Assembly (NCBI GenBank): GCA_963924565.1
Contig: OZ004613.1
Coordinates: forward strand, 12,958,001-13,022,000
Source of the DNA: Ascidiella aspersa
Lineage: Eukaryota
Direction: 5' to 3'
DNA: 64,000 nucleotides
Part shown: positions 3 through 19,502 of the stretch, one piece after another
Position numbering within the stretch: the first letter of the stretch is position 1
How the letters are laid out: each line of letters opens with the position of its first letter
Notes under the pieces: generated by a model
The model's input: only the letters and a program-made list of their open reading frames with translations
What the model was told of the DNA's origin: nothing
The model's database searches: none
Position numbers and translations under genes: made by a program

Positions 3-2020
3 AGCCGCAAGTTGAGATTGGACGAGGAGGAGATTTTTTGGCTAAGAGGAGGATACGAGAACGAGGTGAACATCATCGAATCGCTCCGGGAGCAATCCAG
101 AGCATTGCAGAAGAACGTCATCGCACTTGAAAGGCAAAGAGATGACCTAAAGGCGTCGTACGAAAACTCAATGCAGCAGGTACAATTCTTTGACTAAATA
201 TTCTCATGTTAAACCTATTAATATATTGCTAAAATATATTTTAATAAATTTGCTTTGTTGACATTATATTATAAAAAAACGCACCTGAATTCAACAGAAA
301 TCTGAGTTTTTGATGAACGATTCAGGGCATATACTCGTAATGTGATGAATCGCGTTCAAATGTAAATTCCATCGTAGATTTGTGATTTGAGGACTGATAT
401 TTTTAGTATGTTTAGTACATGATAGATTTAGACGCCAATGATGTAATAGTATGACATTGCAAGAAATCATTTTACATGAAACTTTATACGTTTTATATAA
501 CATATTGGAGTTTTAAAGTCGCCCTTGTTTCAATTTGTTGGTTGTTAGCGTTGTTTCACATTCTTAAACATTAAGCTTTTTTTCTTTGTTTAGGTTTTTC
601 GACTGGGAACGGATTACGATGATCTTATGCACAAATACGAATATGTTAAGCAGCTCGCAGCTGTTGTGGTCAAAACGTTGTGGCATAGTTCCTCTCCCAC
701 CATACTGGTAAAGCCAAACAAGGTAATATACATTATACAGTAAGCGATTGCAGTAGTTGTAAGATTGCGACAAGTCGTCCGTTTTTCGACTAATTTTTAG
801 CTGTGCACATTGTATTTAAGTTCTATAAAATAATTGATTCCGTACACAAACATAGCGAACGTCCTTTTTATTTTTCCGGTCGAAACATTGTGTGAAGGGT
901 GTAGTATCGAGGATATCTTCGTTGTATTTGAAACACTTGCCACATTTTGCTTTTAAACCGATGTTGACTGTATGCCAATAGACAAATAGCAATTTAAGGG
1001 AAATCACAACCTTTTAAATTTGTTTTAAAAACGGTCACTTAACAGCGCACAATTGTCGACTTACAGATGGACGTCGATTCTCTGCGGGAACAGGGGACCT
1101 ACGACATGACGCAGCCCAAGGGTGTGGCCCTCCTCATTCACAACCAGTGGAAGAAGGCGGGGCGTGATAGGCCACACCTTGCAATCGGTGGCGGCAAGAA
1201 ATCAGGCCCCAGTGAACGCAAGAACGACCTCGGGCGACAACTGGAAACCCTCCTGGTCCAACTGGGCTTCTACGCCATCCGCAGATCGAACGTGAGCAGC
1301 TCGGGCATCCGTAACAACGTGTCGGGACTCTCGGACCAGTACCACGGCTACTCGGGCAATCACAACTCGATAGCGGTGGTGGTGGTGGCCAATTCGAACG
1401 AGCACGGGCAGATAATCGACAGCGACGGTAGCGTGGTATCAGTTGGTGCCTTGCTAAACCACTTTGCCGGCAGCCGCTGCCCGACGCTGATCGGCAAGCC
1501 TAAACTCTTTATCTTCCTGCTTAAAGTTACAGTCCGGAAACCGTCGCTGCCTATGGTGAGCGACATACACGGCGCCAAGAAGTCGACGCGTCTTTCTCTT
1601 GGATCCGATTTGCCTGTCTACTTTGAGCCTGAGCCGCTGACACTGGATGATGACTTCATAGTGGCGCGCGTTATGCACGAGGAAGACTCGCTGTCCGACG
1701 GCGGGCCCACGTTCGGCGGCGTTAGTAGCTCGTCGGCCGACGGGGAGATCCCCTGGTTCGCCAACACCTTAATGACGTCACTGGCCGACCAGGCCGGCGT
1801 CGCAGACGTGGCCGAAATCTTGGCCGGCGTAAAGCGAAAGTTTCGCGCGCACTACGCCACGCCGCGATCCGACCGCTCCGAGCAGTCCCGGCTAAGCAAG
1901 GATTCGAACCATTCACCTCTGGAATCCACGATGCTCCGTCCGTCCCCACGCGACGATCACGTAAACATGTTCGTGGATAGCTCGCTCAAGCGAAAGCTTT
2001 ACCTTATGCCCGGGATTTGA
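3..2020 (+). CDS. Coiled-coil + caspase-like (peptidase C14 fold) protein, catalytically dead; 5'-partial. Exons <3..179 and 1067..2020
   Basis: Frame open from the window start, with heptad-like sequence (IIESLREQSRALQKNVIALERQRDDLKASYE). Phase-0 donor CAG|gtacaa at 179/180 matches phase-0 acceptor ttacag|ATG at 1066/1067. The last exon carries caspase motifs YDMTQPKGVALLIHN, LETLLVQLGF, CPTLIGKPKLFIF, DDDFIV, PWFANTL, EILAGVKRK and SSLKRKLYL. SHG is replaced by ANS and QACRG by LLKVT. Confidence 0.85.
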
Positions 2021-3019
2021 GATTGGTATTGGTTTAAAACAGGCAATCCGCAACGAGATATGGTGATTGGCCATACATTATTAAACCCTATAATAGAAAA
2101 CGCTGAAGCAGTTTCCGTTTATTTATGAGTTTTACTGTATTTACATTTATTACTGTTGTAACGTGTTCGTATCTTCACCAGCATTTACCGCAAACAGTAT
2201 TACTATATTTTACTATAATGATCGTATATTTATAAGGTGCCTGTACACTGTAAGCATAACTGATTATTTTTTTATATCGCATAACTTATGTTTTTTAAGG
2301 CTTACTAAACATAGATTAGGGTTAAGGTTAACATTTTTACTGTTCCATAACGTTTTTTGCTTATTTCGTTTTTTTTTCTATAATAAGCATGAAGGCCTAG
2401 GAATCTCAAAAAAGTTAGGAAGTTCAGAAAACAACAGCTATCGCAACAAAATATGTGTTACATTGCGTTCTCGAAGCTATTTGAAAACATTGCATGTACA
2501 GTGAGTTTTGGAAGTTATAAACGCAATTTTATTTTATTTTTTAAGCCTTAAAACAATATTTTTCACATGCATTCTTATTTAGCACAGATAAGCTTAATTA
2601 TAATTTCGTTTTATTTATTTCTACCGTAAGCTATCGGATTATGTATTTTTCTCACTCCACTGTGAATTGCATTCCTTGTACTTGTGCGCTTCAAAAATGG
2701 CCTGTATTCCGACCAGTTGTGGTATGATACTTTGACAAACACAAAGGGTATAACAATCGATAAAAAAATTGGAATTGAGCAAGGCTCGAGAAAAAACAAC
2801 AAAGCAATCGCAAGACAGTGGGCCACATCTATAACAACATGCAGGGACAGTCATCAACAACAAATATGTCGATGAAAACATTAAGCGTGATTTCCTGCAA
2901 GGTTATCATAATGGTAAATGTGGCAGACCTATTTGATTAGGAGGTAGTATTTTTGTAAAGAAGCTTTAAAATGTTTGGGACAGATTTTATACAGAATGTT
3001 GGTAGTCTGTACACAGTAC

Positions 3020-3993
3020 CAGAGACGTGCAGTCAGGGGAGGCAGGTGAGGCAGTGCCTGACCTGCCAACATCTGGCAAAGCAAAAGATATATCAAACAA
3101 AAGTTATATCAGTTAATCTCTACCGCAAATTTTACGTTTCTATACCTAAAGCGTGCTTTATTTTTTCTTCTATTTCTGTTATGTTATTCATATCAAGAGT
3201 TCGCGCGGTCAAAATCATTGAAAACACTGCATGACTGCATTATGCGTGATTTTTTCTTTCGCTAATTCTCTCGGAAAACACGATGAACGATTTAGCTATG
3301 ATTTGAGGCATGCCTTAATTATAACGTCAACGCTATGAAACCTTTCTTTGTCCAGTTTAAATGCCGGCATAGTGCGTGTACATTGACTTCTTTTAGTGTA
3401 AAGTTGAAGTCATAAATAATGGCAGACCTATTGCAAATTTAAAAGTTTTGCATCAGACGACTGGACAAAAAAAAATAACACGCAACTTTCAAAGAGATTG
3501 GTAAAAAAAGGAGTGGATGTGTAGCTGTCACAGGCGTAGCCAGGGTGGCCATGACCACCCAAAAATTTTATAAATATTGTACTCTTAATAATAATTTGTT
3601 TTGTAGCTTTTATGAGCAATACCACAACAGTCCATCGCAGGCGTGCCAAGCCATCAAATGTCATGCACTGTTACGTCATAAAAGATGTAGTCATTATTAC
3701 GTTTCCTATATTAATGTGGTTTTACTACTGCACATTTTGGTGATTTTATGTTAGCTCTCTGAATAATTTTTGAGTATTGCGCTAAAACCCAGTCAGTTGC
3801 TGCTCGAAACGGTTTGCCAGCATATTTATTTGTGTTCGATACGCAGTTCATACAATGGCAAAAGCTAAACAAAAAGAGTTCAAACTTTCTTTTTATTTTT
3901 ATTATTACGATACCATTTTTGTGGTTGTTAAAGAAAAACGTGACTCGAAAAAATTTGTGCCTCACCATCTAGGAACCTCACCGCACGTCACTG
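3020..3993. mobile_element. Non-autonomous hAT-like DNA transposon (MITE), 974 bp
   Basis: TIRs CAGAGACGTGCAGTCAGG (3020) and CCTCACCGCACGTCACTG (ending 3993). Perfect 8-bp TSD CACAGTAC at 3012-3019 and 3994-4001. Subterminal GAGGCA/TGCCTCACC motifs; no transposase ORF. Confidence 0.8.
3804..3888. repeat. ~85-bp dispersed repeat with an inverted copy at 6551..6635
   Basis: The reverse complement of 3804-3888 aligns with 6551-6635 with a few mismatches (AAAGTTTGAAC...GCAAACCGTTTCGA). Confidence 0.8.
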
Positions 3994-4781
3994 CACAGTA
4001 CACATCCAACAAGCCCCGAGGCAATTTATAATGTACAGCATCACAAACAAACACAAAATTACCGGTATAAGTCTGCAAGTTTGCATTTCGCAGTCGTGAG
4101 AATGTCTCGTTACTTCTTATGATTTTCAAGTAAGAATGTTCCTGACGACTAAACAAGGTCTGCTTATTTACTCACTTAACTTGAATTCCAGGTGAGCATA
4201 GTGAACTGCACCAGGTTGCCAATTCCGCTGAGTTGCGATGACTTAGTAGGCCATCCTATTAGTTATATTATTTAGTTTTAAGGTTAGGTGTTGTAGTTTT
4301 TCTCTCAACTGCTTTTTGCAAGGAAACTCAACTAGACTACAGGGGAAGTAGTTTTGGCAGAATGGTTGCTTCTGGCTATTTGACGTTTTGTAATCAGCTT
4401 TTTTACAATCGAACGCTTGACCGCTCATACATATGCATGTTGCGTGAGATTTGTGATACGCTATGTTTGCAGCGATAGTTAACAATAAACGAAACATGTA
4501 CGTTTGCACGCGTTAGCAGATATTTAAAAGTGCATTCGCAGAAAAAATTAAATGTTATTGTTGGTGGAACGCGACGAAAGGTCCTCAAACGAATAAACAG
4601 TTTTAATCAAGCTAATGCGTTTGCCTACAAACAAACAATCAGCTAAGACTTAATACTGTCAGCTGTACTTTGCGTATAAGCCAAAACGAGCTATTTCCGT
4701 TTCTGCTTTTGGTAAAAGTGTGCCTTTCTATCTTATCTTGACGCATAGTGAACAGGCTTGCCATTGGACTCGCCATCAAAA

Positions 4782-7333
4782 ATGAAGGTGATATGTGCCG
4801 GAGTGGCAAAGACCGGTGTTAAGACGATGAACGCTGCCCTAACAATGCTGGGATACGAAGTGCACGACTTTATGGAGAACTACTATTACGCCGGTGACGA
4901 TTGGGTACGGGCAATTCGCGACGGCGCCAAAGTGAAAGAGCTGCGTCGAATGTACGGCGACGTGGATGCCGCTTGCGACTTTCCGATTTTTCAGTTTTGG
5001 GAAGAGCTTCACGAAGCTTTTTCCGACGCAAAGGTGGTTGGTAGTTGTATTGTTGATGTTTTTTTGAACTGCAAAAGATTGAAAATGTGAGATGTAAAGT
5101 AAATGTCGGCCCCGGTACAAGAAATCAATGACTTTTAATTTTGCCTTTCATTGTGATGTCTAGCGATATTCCTTTCAACTATTTCTGATAAAAAAATTTA
5201 ATCTGTCCAGCAAAATTCTTATAACACAAAGGTATATACAATCCTGAGTCTCTTGGGCCTAAAGAAAGCAATAAAATCCTAAATCTATAGAGGTTGATGT
5301 ATAGTTTTTGATCGTCAGTATAGTTTCATTTGACATATCCCGACTAATTGTTTTTTGTTTGTTTCCTAATCTTTTTGATTCGTTAAACTAGCAACAAGTT
5401 TCACGAAAGTATAATTTTGTTACTTTCATTTAACACGACAGATTCAAACAAGGCGAATTTCATAAGATAGTACATTTTACCCAATTTTAAGATAAAAACA
5501 AGTCTCTTCTTCGTTAAGGCAAAATTTGTATCAAAATGAGTATAATTAAAATTTAGAGAATAGAAATACAATCGTGTCTGAAATCATGAAACTATACTAA
5601 CAGATTATCCTGACTGTACGCGACGAGGATTCATGGTACAGGAGCGCAAAGAACCAATGTGCCAGGCTGAGTACGGACATCGGCTACAAGCTGCTTCTCA
5701 CTATTACATACTCCGGTTGGAAACTTCTGGCTTTCCAAAATGCAGCATGTAAGCGAAGTTTTATTACGACAAGTCATTATTCGAATGATCGGTTACGCTT
5801 TACGTAATACGTTTTCTATTTATGTTATTTTTTTTTTATTGCACTTTTTTATTCTGGATTGTATTAAGTCTCAAAATTTAGGAATAATCTGTAAGAATTG
5901 CGAGCATAATGGTTGGAGGTTGTAGTAAGACGTAGTAAGAACATCAAAGCCCATACAGAAGTATAGGTATCATTTTGAACGTTTCGAAAAGCTCTTTATT
6001 CAATTTCAAGAAACGTTCAAAATGATGCTTATTTCTGTATGGGCTTTGATATTCTTACTCCGTGTGTAAAGATTCTTTTGCAACTTATTTAGCTAATTTT
6101 TGTTTGCCATTAAAATAATGCAACTTCAGGTAAATCAGAAATTATATTTCCGCACGAAATCAAAACGGCCACCAATGCTATATGCTTTAATATTTATTGT
6201 GCTCATGCAAGTATTTTTTACAATACATTTCATGTTCTTTAGCAATTTTTAAACTACCGAGTACAGAAATGAATACTTGCTTCCATAATATGTTAAGTGT
6301 GTGTTCGTAATACGATTCGATTCGATATTGTAACTCAATTCTTATCGATTGGACAAGCCTTGGATGAACCTTGTTTCGCAAACAGTCGCCTTTATGGGAA
6401 ATCGCGGCACTTGGCCCTGGTCCACGATTCACATGTACAATGAGGAGGCAGCTAGAAGGTGGTTTCGCAGACATAACCGTGACGTCATCCAGGTGAGTGT
6501 TGCCTTGACAATCAGTGGCGTAGCCAGCCGAAAATTTTGGGGAAGGGCAAAAAGTTTGAACTTTTTTGTTTAGCTTTTGCCATTGTATTAAATGCCGTAG
6601 CGAACACAAATAAATATGCCAGCAAACCGTTTCGATAAAACTTCTAAATTAAGAACATCATCTTAGAAGTATTGTTATATTCAGTTGAAAATTGCTAACA
6701 CTTAAGACAAATCAGAATAAGTAAAAAACTGCTATACATTATCATTTTATAAGTCGTGAATCTTTTTGAAAAACTCACCTTTTAAATGCCATCTGAATAA
6801 TTTCCTCTGATTTTACATCCTATAGATCTAGCATATTGAAATTCCGCTTTAGAATAAAGTTACGGATCTATAGTCGTTATACTATTTGTAGTTCTTTATG
6901 ATTAATTTGCAAAACAAATCTCATCACCTGTAACCGATCGGCACGTGAAGGAATTGTTAAGGGAAAAGGTTTGTTCGAGGTGTTGCACCATAAGCATGCG
7001 ACTCCTGTACACACTAAAACCTAAATCGGCCGTATTAAATGTCGACAAAACGCACCAAAGAGCCAACTGTTGGTGTTCGACGTGCGCCAAGGCTGGGGAC
7101 CACTGTGCGAGTTCCTGAGCAAAGAAGTCCCCGCCGACGACTTTCCGCACAAGAACAGGGGCGCTGAGGTGTTGGAATTGCTGCGCAAGGAGAACGTTAT
7201 CATGCGGCGCTTGCAGAACGAGCTCTACGCCTCGCTGGTCGTCCTCATGCTGGGTTTACTGGATTGGCAGCGTTTGCGTTTTACGCGGTTTGATGACTTA
7301 ACCGTTGACCACGCTACATTACTACATATCTAA
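4782..7333 (+). CDS. P-loop sulfotransferase-like protein (Sulfotransfer_4 type), possibly a damaged allele or pseudogene. Exons 4782..5033, 5604..5748, 6386..6492, 7049..7333
   Basis: Family motifs MKVICAGVAKTG, GYEVHDF, DAACDFP...WEEL...AK|IILTVRD..SW..S, HN..VIQ|NAPK..LLVFDVRQGWGPLCEFL...FPHKN. Intron phases 0/1/0 are consistent. The last acceptor reads CAA, not CAG, and there is an apparent 1-nt frameshift near 7260. Candidate 5'-UTR intron 4192..4755. Confidence 0.85.
5930..6063. repeat. Foldback inverted repeat (~55-bp arms, ~24-nt spacer) in sulfotransferase intron 2
   Basis: GTAAGAACATCAAAGCCCATACAGAA...ATCATTTTGAACGTTTC pairs with GAAACGTTCAAAATGAT...TTCTGTATGGGCTTTGATATTCTTAC. Confidence 0.85.
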
Positions 7334-8619: not shown

Positions 8620-11600
8620 TCACAGTGCTTCGCAGGCGTAGCGAGAGCGCAGCATTTCCGAGAGTAGCGTGTTCTCCGGTACACGGCCGTTCTTGTGCTG
8701 GGAAACGAGGTACTCTTCAACCAGCTGCGTGTAGGACTTTAGGTCGGCGAGCAGCGACATCAGTCTGTCCACTCTGCGTGCCGTATTCAGGTTTGCATTG
8801 CGTTGTAAATAGGGCCATGGGAATAAAGTTTTTAGTTTTGTTTATTTACCTGTCCGGTTGATCAGGGTGGTTTCGCGCCTCGTATTCGTGAACAGCGGCG
8901 TTGACGCTCTGTAGAACCTTCGATATCTCTTCACATTGAGTTTCTGAAACATTGCGAAGTAAATCACCTATAATAAAATCAAACAGCTAACATCTGTTCG
9001 GTTTACACATAGAGATGCGTAAAAATTTAATGTCATAATCGTGTCTGAACACGGAAAATGTTCAACCAATGACAAACTGTAAGCTCTGGCGAATATGAGG
9101 CGCCGCAGGTTTAAAAATTATTGTTACAAGTCCACTACTTGATGAAGATGCCGTTAAAAATATTTTTAGTATTTCCACGAACAGACATCCAAATGGGCGT
9201 TGAAGAGGCGTGTTTCGAGGCTTGCCAATATAATTTACCAGCGTTGCAAACTACTCATTTCACCATTGCTTTAAAGTACATCAAAGTGACGAACATCCTA
9301 GTTAAGTCATTTGTCAAAAAAAATTCATTAAATAGCGAGTTAAGTCCCAGTCCAACTCATAAGCTATGCACATCAATTTATAGTCAACTATTGGAATAAA
9401 AATAGTGCTAATTTTGTAAATTAAATTTATTCTAAGAAATATTTTGCATAGCGAAAAATGATCAGGACAACTAACAAGCATATTTTTCTATAATGTTTTC
9501 TTCAAAAATAAAGAATAAAAAGTTCTACGAATTTTTAAATCAAAACACAATTAATTGAAATGATTTACCTGAATGACTTAAATCAAGTCATGTCATTTAT
9601 AAACAATAATTAAAAGTTCATAAAACAATAACATCGTTTTCGGATTGTTCGACAAAACATAAGGTTGTCTGACGCGATCTATCTGTTACTGAGTTCAAAT
9701 AAGCCTAAGACATTCAAAACGAAAAACTACCGAGTCTTTAGATGGTATACACTGCTATCGTATTAACGAACATCACAAAATAAAAAAAACATAGAAAACG
9801 ACCTACATCAGAACACTTCTCAATACCACCACGTTTTTAATTGGAAACATCATTTTTTTTCTCTGAAATCCACATGAAAACTTTCAAACCAGTTTTACGC
9901 TATTTGTGGCTCTAGTACAAAGGATATCTCCAAACAAATATTTTGCAGAATCAAGGTCGCACCAAGAAGTTTTTCAAGGTTTTACGCGCATTTAAAGCAA
10001 ATAAGCAAAGCGCCTCATTGATTGCGCCATAAGCGCAAATACATGTAGGTTTTATATCCAATTCAACGATTTTCAAGTGTTTCCGGTTCTCCCAAGTGTT
10101 TATCGTCTTCAGGCAAACTGATTTATAACGCATGGAGCGTGAATCAGTCTGTTTGCACCGATACCGAAAGGCGTGCGTCATTCTCCGCTTGGAACGCAAC
10201 AACTGTTGTTTTCCGCACAGCGCTTATAAGATATTCGAAAAATCGCAGTCAAATTTTAGCAATTTTTATTTTTCTTATATGTATTAGGCAAATACATATA
10301 CCGCCAGCCTTACTGTGGGGTGTCGTCTTGACAAGTGCTGTCGGCCAATCTCCCGTGCATCGCTATCGTTAAGGTCTTGTTTACGCAGTTGGCCTAGCAG
10401 AAATCTCGTCGAACACGGCAAATAAATCGTGACATATGTTTATGTGGCCTGAATTTTTATGCGTGGTAAAGGCGCCATCATCACGTGTTGCGATGCAGTC
10501 AAGGGAGTGACAAGGTAAATACCGCTATCGGATATCGGTTCCAGTAAAATAAACAGTGGGGGCGCATTCTAACTGGCATAAATAACACAAGCAAACAGAT
10601 AAGTCGATGAGCTGCACGGTCAGCATTTAACACGCTTAGGACCTTTGTATATTTTGTAGTTTGTTGTGTAAACTCAACATGGCCAAGTAATAAATAAACA
10701 TCAGTTATACTAGCCAACTAAAGCAGTAAATATTAATACGTTATATTTTCCTCTATATAGGATTGTTATTCTTTTATGAAATAGCCAAGTTAGATTTAGT
10801 TTTGGGTGAACTTTTTTTCATAGACTGTTTCATGAAAACAAAATACTTCAGCCCAGTCCTGTGGGTATAATAGCGAGCCTCAAAAGGGTTTTTTTTTTAC
10901 TTGAAACTACGGTTATCTCACTTGTTTCAGTTGCGAAAGGACCGCTCGATGAGTGCTTCCTTTGCAGAAAAGACCAAACGCAGTGATCTAAAAACGATGT
11001 GGGGTGGACGTTTGCGAAAATAAGTTAATTTGATTCCAAAATGAAATTAAGGATAAACACGATCTGTCAATAAAAAATACACCCGATATAGTAGACATGG
11101 CTAATATGGACAGATTTTTTTAAATCTAGTTTGAAAAATGCAGTACAATGTGTTTCAATGTAGAGTACCACAAGTAACAACAGCATAATATATTCAGCTC
11201 ATTTACCCCCCTACAAGAAAAACGAACCGTTCGAGATACGCTGAGCTAAAAAAGAATGATTCGGACATTAAACAAATAAGACGTGCTGCATACAGTAGTA
11301 CCATACATCGGTACGGTCTGCGATGCTGCTAATGTACGTGGAGACGAAATATCTGGTCTCGACATGCTACCGTTATGTTAACTATATATCGAGGCCCGAA
11401 ATAATGCATCAATGCAAATAGTCAATAGTCCACGTCTTACCAATGTCGAAAATGATGAGGTACTTGAGACAGACGTGCTCGGCTTCGTCCAGCCCAAAGC
11501 TGCGGAACTTCTCCTCGAGTCGGTTAAGGCTTTGGACAACCTGGTCAGCGAAGGTGTTGGCCATCTCCGGGTGGACGATGCGTGGAAAGCGGTGGCCACT

Positions 11601-14600
11601 CACCATCACGAACTCGCTCTCGTTGAGCTTGAGCTGAATTAGGTTAGAATCCAGGTCAGGTCAATGAAAGCGCAAGTTTACGACACCCCGTTTTTTTTAA
11701 GATGGAAGTGTTAAGCGGAGGCTTTAAATTTTGAGCAAGGGGTGCGAAATCGGCCAAAAATAGCCTACTCCAAATCCGAGTCCCGAATCCGTGTGTCGTC
11801 CCCCCAGAAAAAAACGAATCCGACTCTTGAGTCCGAATCCGGCAAAATTTGCAACTTCGACGAGTCCCGAGTCCAGCTCCAACTCTTTATTTTAGAATAT
11901 TTCGGATGTATTATTCAGAAGAAGAATAGAAGAGTTCGAGAACAATAAAATAATATTATTTTAAAGAAAGCGACTTCTAAACTAAATTTTACGCTTTCAC
12001 CAGAAATGGATGTTTTTTATCATTTTTTTGTATTATCCAAGACTTGATCAGTTTATGAGAGCAACTGCTCAAAATTCAATTCCAACGATATAGCAACTCA
12101 ATAACCGAATCGTACAGAGCTTACTCTTTAACTCTCAGCCACAATTACAGAAATAGAAAACCTAACCTGACGGTTGATGTGGTCGAGAGCCAGCAGTGCT
12201 ACCCAGCTGCATTGTAACATTTTGATCTGGACCTCGATCTGGGAACAAAACGAAACGTGCCTGTTGTGAGTCCAATAAGTCGAACAAACATTTGTTCAGT
12301 CAGCTCAGGGAAACCGTTCTGTTGTGTGCTCATTGGTATGAAATTAATAATTGCCATGCGTGTAACGTAGGATCGGCCGGCGTGGCTTGCGCCAATTGGT
12401 CATTTGATAATACCGGATTTTTGTCCGAGATTACGGTGGTATCTCTACCAATCCAATAGTAATTTAATGCAGGTATTTTAGCCCTAATTTGCGATCCAAA
12501 AAATTTTACCTTTTATCCAATATTATTAGGTAATTATTAGCGGTAATTAAACTTCTTAACGGTAAAGCAATATTTAATAGCCTAAAAAACAGTTTTGGAC
12601 GTTTCGTTTCATACATTTTGCCAATTTTAAAATAGTTATGACGTCATTTGTTATCGGATCAGATCGCGATGCTTTTACCGAAATACCGGGTATCGAGATA
12701 AGAATTTAAATTAAGTATCGGACATCACTAGGAAGTATGCTCTCCTCAATGTTGCGTTAATGACGCATAACTAAACAACAACATTTATTCACTTTGGGTC
12801 TTTAATAATTAAATTCAAGGAATCTCAAGTAAGCGATTACTAAATTGGTTTAACAAATGCTGCTTCTTAAAGGAATGTCAATACTATTTGTCGATAAATT
12901 CTTGCTACAGACAAGAGTGACGTGAAAATCTGGCGTTTCGGTAGTAGCAGATTTGGAAAACTAGATTTGTTTCAGCTTTTTAAAATTAGGTTAGAATTAA
13001 AATTAGAGCATTTCAGTTTTTCCAAATTAGATTAGAATTAGAAGAATTGCCGAATTCTTAAAAAAATGAATTTCAATTAGAACTTAAACTACAATTACAT
13101 TTAGGTATTCACAACCAATTTAATTTAAATTGCATATTATTCTCATAGGAAATGTGAGCGTATTGTGACGTAACGTTGAACTCCATCGCTGGTTTGGAAT
13201 GTGGGCTAGCACCGGTGGAACATTTGTTTTTCGTGTTTCTTTTAAGTTCAAAATAAACTCTATACCTAAAATTACCGTTTACGGTGTTTAATAAGTGAAA
13301 ACACAATTATTTACAGTACAAGGGTCACTTGTTTCTTTTGTTCCTGTGACTTTATTACCTATAACTGGTGGATCATTAGTCCTTAAAAAGCAGTCATTCG
13401 TAATCAAACTCTATAGTTGGCCAAGTAAGTGCTGTGGGCCAATATAGTTAAACGTTGTGCGCAAGATGTTTCCAGGTATTTTCATTTTAAAACTAAACGC
13501 AGCTTGTTTGTGGTTTGCATCTGTTACCTCTAGCTTGGAGAAAAATGAGGAGTTCTTTGCCCACTCCACCATGATGTACAGGGTCTGGTCGGATATGTAA
13601 CAGACCCATTGGAAAGCGTCGTTCTCGAGGCTGCGTTGGTGGATTGGAAGGCCCTTAATCACCTGCTCCTTTAACTAATTAAAACAATGAGAGTTGGCGA
13701 ATATAAAGTGGTTACGTTTTGAACGTAAATTATATGAATTAAATAAAATACAATACCACAGCAATGAAAAATATAATCTATCACCTAAAATGAGAACATT
13801 CGTGTCCGCCCAGTTGTTAGATTTACCACCTTAAATTAAACTACATATACAAATTGGTTACAGTATGCACGGGTCTATAATGTTGCATAAAAATATTAAC
13901 GTTGTGAATTATGCTCCACATTCTTTATAAGTTGGCATTGAACAGTCATTCCACTGACGACGATACGATTACGTATGTAAACATCGTCTTTACGATGATG
14001 TTGATATTCTTAACATTTTCAATATATTGGTATAATGCTCGTTACTTTTTGGTCACTCGGCGCAACGTTTGAAACTACATTATTTTTAATAATGTTCTAA
14101 ACTTTATCGTGCTGCACATCTTAAAGCGGGCAACCTAAAAGCGCAGTTACCTGTAACAAGGTCTACAAACACTGTTTTGTCTTCTCAAGCTATACTCGCA
14201 AACAAATCGAAAAATAAGAGGTATGGCCACTCTCAATCAGCTCGGGTACGATACACAAGCTTGCTTTATACGCAGCAACAAGCAAAGCCCGCAGTTAAGA
14301 AAACTTTTTTAACTTTATTAAATAAATGTTTTGATCTATTTCGTATCCGTCTACAGTCTACACTGTTTCCTTAAGCTAAACTCACAAAAAAGCGAAAACT
14401 TAGCGCAACGGCAACTCACAATCAGCTCTGGCATTTGGCCGCGCAGCAGCTTCTCGATGAGAACGGGAACGTGCGTGGCCGAGTTAACGAAGCGATCGAC
14501 GTCGAACGAGGGAACGCAGTCGGGTTGCTTGGCGTCGGCGCAATACGGCGCAGCAGCGAAGGCCACCATTCGCGGGTGCTGGTACTCGGCGCCGTAGTGC

Positions 14601-17600
14601 TGGTAGGCTTCGGGGGCTAGCGGCCGAGAGAAGACTGGATCACCCCAGAGACCGCTCAGGCAGGTTAAATTACTCAGCACAGTGAACTTGGCGAGCGGGT
14701 GGCCGGTGCCATGGAATGCGCCTGGGAAAATCTGCGGCTGCGGGATGGCCAGGCTTTCCGGCCGGGGTAGGTAGCGCAGTTCGGGGAAGTAGCCACTGGA
14801 GATGGCAGGCATCGGCAGGGCGCCGGTTGTCGTCGGCGCCGTTGTCAGTAGGATGTGAGGCCCCTGGTGGAAGGACGGCATCTCAGGGCGCGTTGTGGCC
14901 AGCCACGGACCGGGGGTGTCTTCTGCGCCACCGAAGATGATATGCGGTCCTACGGACGGCGGCTGCGAACAGATACGAGGGTTATTTAGTAAAAAAAGGG
15001 TGCCCGGTGAAGTTTAATTGCCTTGGGTTATGCTTTTGCGAAATTCGGATTCAGTCAACACGCGGTTTAGAAACGAGCGAAACGAGTTGCACCGCTGATT
15101 GTTTTCGCGAAACGCGCTTATCATTATCGCGACCCAATTACGCGAAACGTTCTGTTCGAACGCCGCGCCGTTAAACTGAAAGCAGCCGCACTCGTTTCCC
15201 GGGCAGGTTTCTCGGAACTCGCTTTGCCGATGTTTAAGTCAAAGTTCAACGTCGGTCGCGCCCTGCAGCAGCTTCCAAAAGTTCGTGAACTAAAATTTGG
15301 CACAGCTTCAGCTTGTCAAGGTCTCGTTTGATTACGGACTTATGGTCTATATTCGGTTTGACGTGTCAAGGCAAACTTGTCGATTATTTGTCGAAAGGTA
15401 TAACCTACTATAAATAGCCTGCGGCCCGCCAGCAGTGATTTTTTTCAATGTCAAAAGGTTTTAATGTCATTTAAAAGGTTGCACAACAGAGTAATATAAA
15501 AAGGATCCAAACAATTATTACGTGCATGTAACCAAGGGTTTATACGTTGCTGTATCTCTTGCAGAAATTTTTGACTAAGCAATTGTTCCTATGACAACAC
15601 ACAACTAATTTTTTAAGCTCACTTGAAAATATGACCAAAATGTTTTTACTTTACCAGAATAGACGATAAAGTCTTTTCGACAAATAGCTATGAGTCATTT
15701 AGTTTAAACCAATTCAGTTCGCTTAGGTCGCTTAGTTAACCGTCAAGACTTTTTTGTTCAATGCAGAGGTTCTTGAACTGGGGTCCATGGAGCCCTTGGG
15801 GGTCCCGCTAGTTTTAGGGGGTCCATGAAGGCCAAATTAAAATATTAGTGTATATTTAAGAAGCAATCAATTTTCCAAAGAAAACAATTTTCATTAAAAA
15901 TAAAACGTTTTAGCACTGAATGTATTCAGACTCCATTTTACTTTCACATTTTTTGGACCGAAATCAACGTATTCCTGAAGTCTATTTGTATTGTGATTTG
16001 TGACGTCAAGTCATGACATTATATTTGAAAATTTCTAGTCTTCCGTAGTCCACGCAAAACAAAAAAAAATTAGAGGTCCACGGCCAAAAAAGTTTAAGAA
16101 CCCCTAGTTTAATGTGTAAAGACTTGATTTAATATTTTTTGTTTGTTATGAATACAAGTTATGCCGCAAATTCGTGAAATAAAACAAAAAAGGTGACCTA
16201 TAAAGAAAAAATTAAAGTGTATAGGCGTCTCAGTAGAAATAATTTTTTTTTGATTTTTGCTGACAACCGGTGATACGCAAAGTTTAGTGGTGATTTGTTA
16301 ATATTTTTTTCTGGCATATGGAAAATGACAAACAGCTATGAAAAGGCTTCACAAGAAAAATAACATCTTATGAAATTGTTGAGTAAACTGTTAAGTGAAA
16401 ATATAGAATAAATCAATGCAAAAAAATAACACAGAACTTTATAGCATGCTGTAACATAGGGAATAGGCTAAATCACCACCAAAAATCTCAGCAAAATATA
16501 ATCAAAACATTTTTCTAAATTAAAGATCGATTTGAGTCTCGGACAAAAACAAAGTAAGCTGCGAGATGAACCTAAAGCGATGAAACAGTGATCATCAAAC
16601 TACGGCAAGTAAGAAATTATCGTATTAGTTAGAAGTAGAGCAATTATTTTTAGAACTGAAAACAAAATCCACATCTGATTTGACCTAATACGAATACAAT
16701 GAAAAGTAAACGCATTGTTGTACTAAGTATACTCCATAAGTGTCGTGACATCGTCAGTCACTTGTTTCTGGTATTTTATTGACAACCGATTAATCACAAA
16801 TTAGTTATTTCTCATATATAAGCATCTTTAAAATTCTTCGTGGCATTGTAAAACAAAAACAACACTGAAAATGCCAAAGTAAAACAAGACGTTGGCTATG
16901 TTAGAAAATTGTTATTGAATGTGTAATACCGTTAAAACGTTGTTGAAAGTAATTTAAAACTACAGTTTCTAAAATATTCAACTGAACGATAATTACAGAA
17001 ATCTCACTACGTTTTTTTTTTAATTTGTTAACCCTTTTCGTGTATTTTGTAAACGACTTTTACTTGAATACATTTTGACCTAACGTGTAAATTTTGACAA
17101 GAACTTTTGGCGATAAGTTGAAAAAAATCGCCCCAGTTATAAATGCTACTGTATACTTTACCATAACTAAGTTGCCAGTTGCGGAGTAGTCGGTTTTTAT
17201 CTTGGTAATCTCGCTCATGACTTTTTCGTGGTGCTTTCTGGCCCGATCTTGCTTGTAAAGTGGCCCGAATGCATTCCTTCCTCCACGTACCCGATTTTTT
17301 CTCACGGCTGTGCAACATTTTTTAAATATTTTCAAATGTTAGCAATATATTAATGGCCTGTAGATTTTTCAGAAATATAATAGACAAACGGAAAAAGTAT
17401 TGTTTTGAAATGTGAGTTTGTTGTACACACGGCAGTGTTATAATGACTTAAGTCTTAAGTCCGTTTTTAAATGACTTGAATTAAGACTTTTTGACCAATG
17501 GCTTGACTTGGATTTAAGTCATTGCGTCAAAAAAACTCGGGTTAAAAATAAATGTTTTTATTTTACATTATTTTTATAAAATTGAGCTATTTATTTCATT

Positions 17601-19502
17601 TCTGCAAGTAAAACGATTAGATTGCTACATGTTGTTTATTTTTGTTGTTTGTGAGTTGAGGTACTGCTCATAATCGCAAGAGTTTAACCATTTTAATAGT
17701 TTATCGATTTATTTTTATAGAAGCCATTTAATTTGCTGACGTGCTCTAATATTGACTTGACTGGGACTTGACTTGGGTAACTGATGACTTGCCTGGGACT
17801 TGACTCGTTATGTTTTTTAAATATTTGACTGAAACTCAGGGCGTTATAAAATAACACTGATACATTGCCTCTTTGTACCGTGCGATTGTATTTTTCCATG
17901 TATTTATGCAAAAAAAATATTTTTTTATTATTGTTAACTTTCGTTATTAAATTTTATTTTTTATTATTATTTTAGCACTTTGTTTGATTCTAATAATGTC
18001 GGAATAAGATAACTAAACGGCTGCTAATCCGATAAAGGTTAACTTCTAAATTTATTGGAATTGAAAGAAAACCAAAAAAACCTAAATCAATTATTTAATT
18101 TACCTATAAGAAACTGTTCTTTAAAAGCCTTAACTTAAATTCTTGTGGGCAAACGATTTGACCGGAACTTAAGACATAAGAGATGTGGCTTATCTTGGTC
18201 TTGAAAAATCGATTATCTTACTTGGCGTATTGGCAAATGGAAAATATGAAGCTGTCACGTATTATTTTTAGTTCTTTTTACTTTGAAAATATTGCTTAAA
18301 TCAAATTAAGCCAACCCCTTCTAAAATTAACTTCATGAAATTACCTATTGCAGTAATTTGACTTGCTTTTGTAATCGCGACATGGCTTTGGGCAATTATT
18401 GGATTGGGCAGAGTCTTTAATAGGTATAGGCCTACGTTGAAAAAATGGTATAACTTTGTCATTCGGAAAAGACCTAAGGTGGACGTAAGTTGTTATGTAC
18501 TTTGCATTTGTGAGTTACTGCAATTTATTTGAGTTACATTTTTGCGTAAAAAATCAGATTACCTTCAACCTTCATGCCGACCTTTAGGCACTTCTGGTAG
18601 CGGCAGTGTTGGCATCCCTTTCGTTGCGCTTTGTCGATCAAACAGCGGCTGGTGTGGACGCATGTGTACTTCTTGTTGTTTTGCACCGTCCTCTTAAAGA
18701 AGCCTTTGCAGCTCTCACACGTCAAGAGGCCGTAATGATAGCCAGATACCTGAAAATTGCAGCGAAGATACATGTCAAACATAGTCTGACAATACGAACA
18801 ACATTTTTACACAGATTTGAAAAGAATGCCGAGCACATCTTAGTTAAGCATCTTGGAGGAAAGTTTTCCTCAAAGTATGTACAACAATCTGTTATTTCTC
18901 TAGTAATGGGGAACGTAAATCGCCATTTTGGCGGTGTGACATCTTACTTTTTTTAATTATTAGCTAGCGATATTTAAGCATTACGTATTGCCAACTTTAA
19001 GGGCATGTACACATTGACTTATGGTTCACATTGCAGTAGGTTAAATCAAATATTACGAAGTCTCAAACTTCTTCAATGTCATTTGAGTTAACTTCGACGT
19101 TTGTTCGAGCATTGTATTTTTAGAGGTGCTTTATTTAACTGCTATATCCTGTAACGGTTTGCAGATTTTATAGTTGTGGCTGCGTTTGTCGTACAAGAAA
19201 AAATAAGTTGGATTCTTTTATTGAAATGGCGCAAACATCTATTTTAAAAATCAAAGTAGCATTTGCGTTCACAAACTTACACTTTACATCCGAATTAATG
19301 GATCTTACCCAATGGTTACGTGCGATTTATCACAATATTTGTGCAATGCAGTTTGGCTCGTCCAAAACATTCAACCGATCCCTTTTCGCTTTTTGAGTGC
19401 TCTACCTGATATGCATAGTCAACTTAGATTTACATTAGCCTTAGTTAGGTGTACCTTATCGCCACAGACTGGACACGGCTCGTTGTAGCTCTTTCCCTTC
19501 AT
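8620..19502 (-). CDS. NR5A: Nuclear receptor NR5A (FTZ-F1/SF-1/LRH-1 family), ~527 aa. Exons 19502..19455, 18749..18563, 17307..17162, 14962..14420, 13674..13528, 12238..12167, 11633..11441, 8943..8850, 8773..8620
   Basis: C4 zinc fingers CPVCGDK|[24 protein letters not shown] with the NR5A P-box. FTZ-F1 box [26 protein letters not shown] motifs [42 protein letters not shown] and AF-2 LLSEML. All eight introns are GT-AG with matching phases; exons total 1584 nt. Confidence 0.95.
10922..10987 (-). CDS. Candidate 66-nt frame-preserving cassette exon of NR5A ([22 protein letters not shown])
   Basis: Flanked by tttttag| and |gtgaga on the minus strand. Phase 1-1, stop-free, and in frame with the flanking exons 7 and 8. 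Confidence 0.45.
15764..16106. mobile_element. hAT-type MITE, 343 bp, in NR5A intron 3
   Basis: TIRs CAGAGGTTCTTGAACT and AGTTTAAGAACCCCTA. 8-bp TSD GTTCAATG / GTTTAATG (7/8 match). Internal GGGGTCC motifs. Confidence 0.75.
17433..17859. mobile_element. MITE with subterminal GACTTGA repeats, in NR5A intron 2
   Basis: TIRs CAGTGTTAT...ATAACACTG, with many GACTTGA(C/A) motifs near both ends. TSD degraded. Confidence 0.6.

Follow-up and report, generated by a model that had tools for sequence, protein, structure and literature searches.

A catalytically dead caspase fold on a helical scaffold, encoded by a single-copy, expressed gene of Ascidiella aspersa

What use could an organism have for a caspase fold from which the catalytic residues have disappeared? 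This question is raised by the first lines of a 64,000-nucleotide stretch of the genome of the tunicate Ascidiella aspersa (GenBank assembly GCA_963924565.1, contig OZ004613.1, positions 12,958,001 to 13,022,000 of the forward strand), hereafter the window, which is G000:C7:12958001-13022000 in our own numbering. A program-made list shows there two open reading frames on the plus strand, 12..197 and 1067..2020, in AT-rich surroundings, which a first-pass annotation, made from the letters alone, had joined into one gene with a coiled coil in front of a dead caspase domain. We have followed up this locus, with 20 kb of upstream sequence added, in the genome (75 contigs, 308.6 Mb), using single exons of the A. 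aspersa gene or public orthologues as queries. The reading that we favour, with a probability of roughly 0.65, is that of a single-copy, expressed nine-exon gene, whose dead caspase fold serves as a non-enzymatic binding module on a helical scaffold.

A complete caspase fold without catalytic residues

The frame 1067..2020, which forms a GC-rich island (GC of 0.55-0.64, against 0.30-0.39 in the flanks), has the 317 codons on the plus strand that the first-pass annotation had described, and corresponds to the last exon (exon 9) of the gene. Its product matches the Pfam family Peptidase_C14 (PF00656) over residues 57-263, with an E-value of 1.6e-10 and 41.6 bits against a cut-off of 21.4. Among PDB chains, the best matches are caspase-3 and caspase-7 (E-value 6.1e-6), within 144 distinct sequences retrieved at E-values up to 10. 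A structural model of the exon 9 product, from a 35-row alignment, reached a predicted local distance difference test score (pLDDT) of 80.1 and a predicted template modelling score (pTM) of 0.80. A Foldseek comparison against caspases and c-FLIP(L), as the first-pass annotation had proposed, matched this model as a complete caspase fold to caspase-7, caspase-3, CED-3, caspase-9 and the protease-like domain of c-FLIP(L), with E-values of about 4e-13, and a VIA search found caspases and c-FLIP(L) (3h13, 3h11) as well. Since Pfam, PDB, model and Foldseek all coincide, the caspase fold is real and complete, with the alpha-beta architecture of the caspase/haemoglobinase type and both p20- and p10-like halves.

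The places of the catalytic residues were located through HMMER alignment to caspase-3 and through a MAFFT alignment with 22 canonical caspases (Table 1). None of the three features of an active caspase, namely the His of SHG, the Cys of QACxG and the arginines of the S1 pocket, is found in this protein. The catalytic His had been reported as lost through a change of SHG to ANS; its loss is confirmed, in a register one residue off, as the aligned residues are NSN. The replacement of QACRG by LLKVT holds in both alignments, neither of which places a Cys there. The claimed loss of the S1 arginines stands too: MAFFT sets Ser over both the Trp and the Arg of SWR, and the column of the first S1 Arg, RxG(T/S), is likewise occupied by Ser in a loop whose alignment is uncertain, where an Arg two residues further on (SERKND) is not conserved in the family. 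At the other end of the domain, the C-terminal strand fits the canonical caspase consensus ..KKLYFxPG, with L307, K310, P315 and G316 invariant in the family and a strand at 297-305 in the model. In caspases, this strand beta-6 forms the dimer interface.

The loops that replace the active site are conserved as well. In eight tunicate sequences, 44 columns are invariant, among them V154-T155, where the Cys loop used to be, and P214-T215-F216-G217-G218, at the site of the former S1/S3 loop. At a shorter distance, we classified 28 coding differences listed among three sequencing runs (X1-X3, described below) in exons 5-9, and found that, among these, 24 are synonymous and four non-synonymous (17 and four, respectively, in exon 9). 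Over 360 synonymous and 1203 non-synonymous sites, the listed differences correspond to a ratio of non-synonymous to synonymous differences per site (pN/pS) of about 0.05. Strong purifying selection thus acts on the fold, and notably on its rebuilt active-site loops. A decaying copy, which the first-pass annotation had considered as an alternative, is ruled out by the conservation in tunicates, the 24 versus 4 differences, and the splicing and expression of the gene. That annotation had named as the signature of decay an intact QACRG in orthologues combined with relaxed selection here: a QTC is indeed kept in an amphioxus relative (P0089, see below), but selection on the A. aspersa gene is strong.

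Structure, splicing and expression of the gene

A single gene does join a helical N-terminal part to this complete and catalytically dead caspase fold, as had been proposed, although through a different exon structure. Its start lies outside the window, as anticipated: once extended upstream, the model begins at G000:C7:12953093, about 4.9 kb before the window, and comprises nine exons whose lengths add up to 2259 nt, or 753 codons. The 742-residue isoform P0083 from the tunicate Clavelina tiles the locus by tblastn in nine collinear pieces, the bounds of which were refined through the splice sites read in the DNA, and positions 3..2020 of the window correspond to the last three exons. A genome search with a profile of the N-terminal part matched exactly the eight upstream exons and no other place, and the genome searches reveal the gene as single copy in A. 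aspersa. The junction between exons 3 and 4 (L003 6599/6987, in the numbering of the upstream locus L003) splits a Cys codon (TG/C), with a choice of acceptor that lacks read support; the position is Arg in the orthologues of Ciona and Clavelina and in the amphioxus protein P0090, and Gln in P0089. Downstream of the stop codon, no AATAAA occurs on the plus strand within about 1.5 kb.

The exon that ends at 179 was correctly recognised in the first pass, since the frame 3..179 is open, preceded by AG and followed by GT. Its product, 61% identical to Ciona P0100 and aligned with residues 336-394 of Clavelina P0083, is helical, with an RGG turn between the end of one long helix and the beginning of the following one, matching helices 326-371 and 375-446 in the model of the Ciona protein. 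However, the single phase-0 intron 180..1066 previously drawn between this exon and the caspase frame does not hold, as it overlooked an intervening phase-0 exon of 129 nt. This exon 8 encodes the end of the last long helix plus the linker to the caspase fold. It aligns with residues 394-441 of Clavelina P0083, with residues 432-473 of amphioxus P0089 and with Ciona savignyi P0011, and is matched by the N-terminal profile at an E-value of 4.6e-13. Clavelina, the two Ciona species and amphioxus all conserve it, and in annotated proteins of four other species it is contiguous with its two neighbours.

Four sequencing runs (X1-X4) were mapped on L001, a locus of 5,100 letters that holds exons 5-9. 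In X1 and X2, introns are covered as well as exons, so that these runs look like DNA. Run X3, of unrecorded kind, shows depth over the exons only, exon 8 included, and zero depth in the intron bins; together with contigs that carry GT..AG joints, this indicates that X3 behaves like RNA. Its contigs join L003 8790 to 9371, L003 9503 to window position 3, and window positions 722 to 1067 (L001 2222 to 2567), thereby connecting exons 5-6, 6-7 and 8-9, all through GT..AG introns; in the contig starting at 1067, ten letters from the 3' end of exon 8 come first. The X3 contig over exon 7 extends past 179 by two letters and leaves 7 unplaced, which fits the exon at 594 because this one starts with GT (GTTTTT), whereas the exon at 1067 does not (ATGGAC). 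As for the 179/1067 junction predicted in the first pass, no listed read or contig joins the two positions. Such an in-frame join may nevertheless exist as a minor isoform, since two annotated Clavelina isoforms (P0098 and P0099) skip the equivalent 44-residue exon. Finally, the fourth run, X4, is true RNA; about 6% of it was read, and 20 reads were placed. Those on exon 9 have their first mate on the minus strand, the usual sign of plus-strand RNA. The gene is therefore spliced and expressed.

Relatives of the gene and its helical N-terminal part

A search of protein representatives gave 76 matches at E-values up to 0.001 and five at E-values up to 1e-30. Among them are P0008, a Clavelina lepadiformis protein of 693 residues (LOC143465426) whose C-terminal 300 residues match the frame 1067..2020, the Branchiostoma protein P0012 (LOC109476238) and P0011, a fragment from Ciona savignyi. 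A profile built on full-length members found P0100, of 751 residues, from Ciona intestinalis (LOC104265773), which shares 44-83% identity with the A. aspersa gene exon by exon. The proteins P0100 and Clavelina P0083/P0085 (LOC143465426/427/308) are orthologues with the same dead motifs, although Clavelina has three annotated loci and exon-skipping isoforms where A. aspersa has one copy. These Clavelina loci (LOC143465308, LOC143465426 and LOC143465427, encoding P0083-P0087, P0098 and P0099) are each recorded on a contig of 20,453,238 bases. The first pass had suggested that the protein may define an undescribed scaffold or decoy: its biology is indeed undescribed, but the family is already in public databases, where its members are all labelled 'uncharacterized'.

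We compared 12 tunicate proteins (the A. aspersa product, P0001-P0007, P0009, P0010, P0083 and P0100), and in all of them the catalytic dyad is absent and the catalytic loop lacks a Cys, the place of QACRG being occupied by LLKVT, LLRVT, LMRVT, FLRVS or FLHVT. The amphioxus protein P0089 (LOC118404675), in contrast, keeps AHG and QTC at the places of the catalytic His and Cys, and scores 93 bits with PF00656 against 41 for the A. aspersa protein, so that enzymatic activity may persist in it; both motifs are missing in P0090, its tandem paralogue. A further amphioxus entry, the 'hypothetical protein' P0094 of 1483 residues, is a fused model of these two neighbours. The amphioxus proteins P0089 and P0012 share the full-length architecture of the A. 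aspersa protein, with the RGG turn, EKRFPV, WRxH and a C-terminal ..FFMPG in common. In a quick maximum-likelihood tree computed from 35 rows and 282 columns of the caspase domain, the 11 tunicate rows group in one clade, with a support of 99 in the Shimodaira-Hasegawa-like approximate likelihood ratio test (SH-aLRT), and P0089 is their sister (SH-aLRT 97). As this sister keeps AHG and QTC, the sequences are most simply read as a loss of the dyad on the tunicate stem. The placement of P0090 with canonical caspases, at the end of a very long branch (2.43), is treated as an artefact and not trusted, since this protein shares its N-terminal region with P0089 and lies in tandem with it.

The part upstream of the caspase fold had been regarded as a coiled coil placed directly before it, and a much longer architecture emerges. 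In an AlphaFold model of the Ciona orthologue (27-row alignment, pLDDT 77.4, pTM 0.63), residues 26-446 are entirely helical, with ten helices of 5 to 72 residues, and the caspase fold begins at about residue 460. In the predicted order, a bundle of helices (about 190 residues) comes first, followed by long antiparallel hairpins (about 230 residues), a short linker and the caspase fold; the helical part ahead of the domain amounts to some 440 residues. Various antiparallel coiled coils (SMC, Rad50, prefoldin, IpaB) match residues 234-446 of this model, for the most part with a high root-mean-square deviation. Because these hairpins are antiparallel, the parallel, CARMA-like oligomerisation suggested earlier finds no support. 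For this N-terminal part, Pfam reports nothing above its cut-offs in five full-length relatives or in exons 1-8, so that the profile check proposed for a death effector domain (DED), CARD, death domain (DD) or other death-fold prodomain found none in the gene or in these relatives.

Searches for N-terminal relatives were limited in sensitivity and are not informative on absence from vertebrates or other phyla; the family has been found so far in tunicates and amphioxus. Residues 1-485 of amphioxus P0089 retrieved only their own cluster, one protein among 8000 scored candidates, and the full-length profile A3 found only four proteins, three from Clavelina and one from Ciona. In the ESM Atlas, there was no usable feature match and the structure matches had template modelling (TM) scores of 0.28-0.41, which are not meaningful, while a PDB sequence profile search with the N-terminal part gave coiled-coil noise, the best match being a designed 'protein origami' at an E-value of 0.0011. 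Family members excepted, the N-terminal profile was absent from the other long proteins with a C-terminal caspase domain among 100 retrieved.

By these features, the A. aspersa protein is a pseudo-caspase, and it is neither c-FLIP, nor a paracaspase, nor a CARD-coiled-coil protein. With the canonical caspases of the C14A type (caspase-3, -7, -9 and CED-3), it shares the fold, the GKPKLF strand, the RCP motif and the C-terminal KKLYxxPG, but it lacks their His/Cys dyad, S1 Arg and CARD or DED prodomain. Whereas c-FLIP(L) carries two N-terminal DEDs in tandem and is, in the available portion of PMC7586951, a close paralogue of caspase-8 and caspase-10, the A. aspersa protein has about 440 helical residues with no death-fold domain, and caspase-3 and caspase-7 are the nearest solved relatives of its domain by sequence. 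Its likeness to c-FLIP is of fold only (3h13, 3h11), and a pairing with caspases would be proposed by analogy. MALT1 is another case of a caspase-like domain in signalling scaffolds, with a death domain and Ig domains upstream that are missing here, and the N-terminal CARD typical of CARMA/CARD9 proteins does not appear in the Pfam scans of the A. aspersa protein.

Possible uses of the fold and alternative readings

In the mechanism that we favour, the domain would cleave nothing and would act as a protein- or peptide-binding head on the helical scaffold, through the remodelled former substrate cleft, with its invariant PTFGG and ..VT, through the beta-6 dimer surface, or through both, leaving localisation or assembly to the helical N-terminal part. 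The strong conservation of the rebuilt cleft loops, which rank with the best-conserved columns, suggests that the fold is used to bind and not to cut, since it would not be expected if only the fold or only the dimer surface mattered. The likeliest single class of partners would be another caspase-fold protein, by analogy with c-FLIP(L) and caspase-8. The candidates include an active caspase, in the c-FLIP-like manner for which the available text of PMC7586951 offers a precedent, or a role at microtubules following the lead discussed below. As for the role in apoptosis or innate immunity put forward in the first pass, it would be pure conjecture.

Several points weigh against this picture. The binding mechanism itself is one that we infer. 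Folding, too, requires the C-terminal strand to be conserved, so that its conservation alone is no proof of a dimer interface. The counts of synonymous and non-synonymous changes cover the listed differences, with 22 further rows lying outside them, and the architecture comes from the AlphaFold model of the Ciona orthologue, with a shallow alignment of about nine rows over the N-terminal part. Expression appears low in the X4 sample, given its 20 reads from about 6% of the run, and the 179 to 594 joint was not seen directly among the X3 contigs. This missing joint, together with the two unlinked frames of the original list, could be taken to indicate two separate genes, or a decaying caspase pseudogene beside a coiled-coil gene. 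This possibility we regard as barely credible in the face of the spliced contigs that connect exons 5-6-7 and 8-9, the contiguity of exon 8 with its neighbours in the proteins of four other species, and an intact open frame with 24 synonymous against 4 non-synonymous differences among those listed. A still-active protease with unconventional residues, for example H113 with another nucleophile, is hardly more plausible: H113 lies three residues past the usual place of the His, C138 is invariant, and amphioxus P0089 has the canonical His and Cys; however, H113 is replaced by R, K or Y in other family members, with no conserved His nearby, and C138 is the structural Cys of RCPxLxGKPK that canonical caspases share and that is nearly invariant in the 35 rows, to which the loss of the S1 Arg and the Cys-less loop of all 12 tunicate sequences must be added.

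A third alternative sees in the product a structural protein of microtubules, where the N-terminal bundle would be a diverged SPACA9-type domain docking on the tubulin lattice (ciliary, flagellar or manchette-like); the dead caspase domain would travel with it, as would the hairpins, in a structural or recruiting role. It stems from a structural match of model residues 35-211 to SPACA9 (chain 8otz_0A), the only one for this region among the matches listed, and is reinforced by an order of helices that fits the published SPACA9, with four long helices and insertions after the first and the third (PMC9564825, in its available portion). The same portion of that paper reports no match for the SPACA9 fold among human proteins in the PDB or the AlphaFold DB, and lists N123 as a tubulin contact, the residue to which the N of a VNH motif in our family corresponds; this motif and (V/I)(I/V)S(V/I)LP occur at the places predicted from the structural ranges. 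Yet VNH is absent in both amphioxus paralogues, and PF15120, absent from the Pfam scans of the family and of exons 1-6, matches in the genome only the true SPACA9 gene on contig C9 (C9:18025604-18028167) and not the pseudo-caspase gene. Moreover, alignment of the N-terminal profile with each of the three SPACA9 exons by hhalign gave probabilities of 0.5% or less, and in the reverse direction a search with this profile failed to recover the SPACA9 locus. SPACA9, a protein of about 220 residues that stands on its own, shows no significant sequence similarity to the A. aspersa protein. In total, homology by sequence was negative in six ways, and SPACA9 remains a structural lead only. We thus find the microtubule reading unlikely, and so too the related idea that the bundle is a true, highly diverged SPACA9 paralogue in a chordate protein of the microtubule lumen (ciliary or sperm) with a caspase fold, which seems to us slightly the more doubtful of the two.

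The SPACA9 gene itself lies at G000:C9:18025604-18028176 on the minus strand (loci L005-L007), where three exons match PF15120 with a best E-value of 1.3e-15; both of its introns are phase 0, the first with what appears to be a GC donor (CAG/GCAAGT) instead of GT. When SPACA9 and the pseudo-caspase gene are compared, all four introns are phase 0 and their positions differ by about 5-12 residues in a rough structural mapping, which was not used as evidence.

To our knowledge, c-FLIP(L) is the only well-understood pseudo-caspase, and it is built on death effector domains. The family described here represents a second, independent pseudo-caspase lineage, strongly selected and on a completely different, non-death-fold prodomain. 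The amphioxus relative with the dyad provides a natural before-and-after pair for studying the conversion of a protease into a binding module, and the presence of the family in Ciona places it in a tractable model organism. If the bundle were a SPACA9 paralogue, amphioxus would have a caspase attached to microtubules through a non-death-fold prodomain, and the tunicate members would be dead descendants of it, kept as structural or recruiting parts, which would amount to a principle of caspase activation or anchoring outside CARD, DED and PYD; were the resemblance real, it would link a caspase fold to microtubule inner proteins, a link unreported in the literature searched. Tunicates lack caspase-9 and Apaf-1 according to the available portion of PMC10959488, and a conserved caspase-fold scaffold is therefore relevant to the wiring of cell-death and caspase signalling in these animals. 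In our literature search, no paper turned up that deals with a caspase-fold protein of this architecture, although Ciona caspase inventories may list the gene, and the available portions of PMC10959488 and PMC10923776 make no mention of the gene or of the architecture.

Table 1. Features of the pseudo-caspase gene and its surroundings (window positions unless L003 is indicated; the tblastn query was Clavelina P0083)
Feature	Position	Strand	Description
tblastn piece 1	L003 5093-5302		begins with ATG
tblastn piece 2	L003 5862-6071
tblastn piece 3	L003 6427-6597
tblastn piece 4	L003 6988-7095
tblastn piece 5	L003 8594-8788
tblastn piece 6	L003 9351-9503
tblastn piece 7	6-182
tblastn piece 8	594-734
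tblastn piece 9	1082-2017
Exon 7 of 9	3..179	+	59 codons, phase 0 at both ends; AG at 1-2, GT at 180
Intron 7	180..593	+	GT..AG (gtacaa ... tttag)
Exon 8 of 9	594..722	+	129 nt, 43 codons, phase 0; tag/GTTTTT ... AAG/gtaata
Intron 8	723..1066	+	GT..AG; joint seen in X3 contig
Exon 9	1067..2020	+	caspase-fold (p20/p10-like) pseudo-protease domain; 317 codons plus TGA stop
N109-S110-N111	1391..1399	+	over caspase S-H-G; Ser in place of the catalytic His
L151-L152-K153-V154-T155	1517..1531	+	over QACRG; no Cys in either register; V154 and T155 invariant in the family
P214-T215-F216-G217-G218	1706..1720	+	replaces the substrate-binding loop with the S1 Arg (GYxSWR); invariant in 8/8
SSLKRKLYLMPGI	1979..2017	+	C-terminal strand, corresponds to caspase strand beta-6
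Sulfotransfer_4 match	4752-5087	+	GC-rich open stretch; E-value 8.8e-21, profile positions 1-94
Sulfotransfer_4 match	7025-7330	+	GC-rich open stretch; E-value 1.1e-14, profile positions 171-214
zf-C4 match	18537-18806	-	nuclear-receptor DNA-binding domain; E-value 4.3e-26
GC-rich stretch	11412-11660	-	no Pfam match
GC-rich stretch	14354-15013	-
High-copy repeat	~2921-3600		L001 4421-5100
RVT_1 match (weak)	L003 2347-2697	+	E-value 4e-4, 20.6 bits, below the cut-off of 29.6

The surroundings of the gene hold a few other elements (Table 1). Downstream of its 3' end there is a high-copy repeat, as deduced from the depth of words in the DNA-like runs, which rises abruptly there (about 50-130 before, 4,500-48,900 within), alongside numerous loose ends and small skips. 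The two matches to Sulfotransfer_4 are probably exons of a sulfotransferase-like gene located directly downstream. On the opposite strand, the two GC-rich stretches may belong to the same gene as the open stretch that matches zf-C4. On the other side, the weak RVT_1 match, about 2.4 kb upstream of the ATG, is probably a retroelement fragment.

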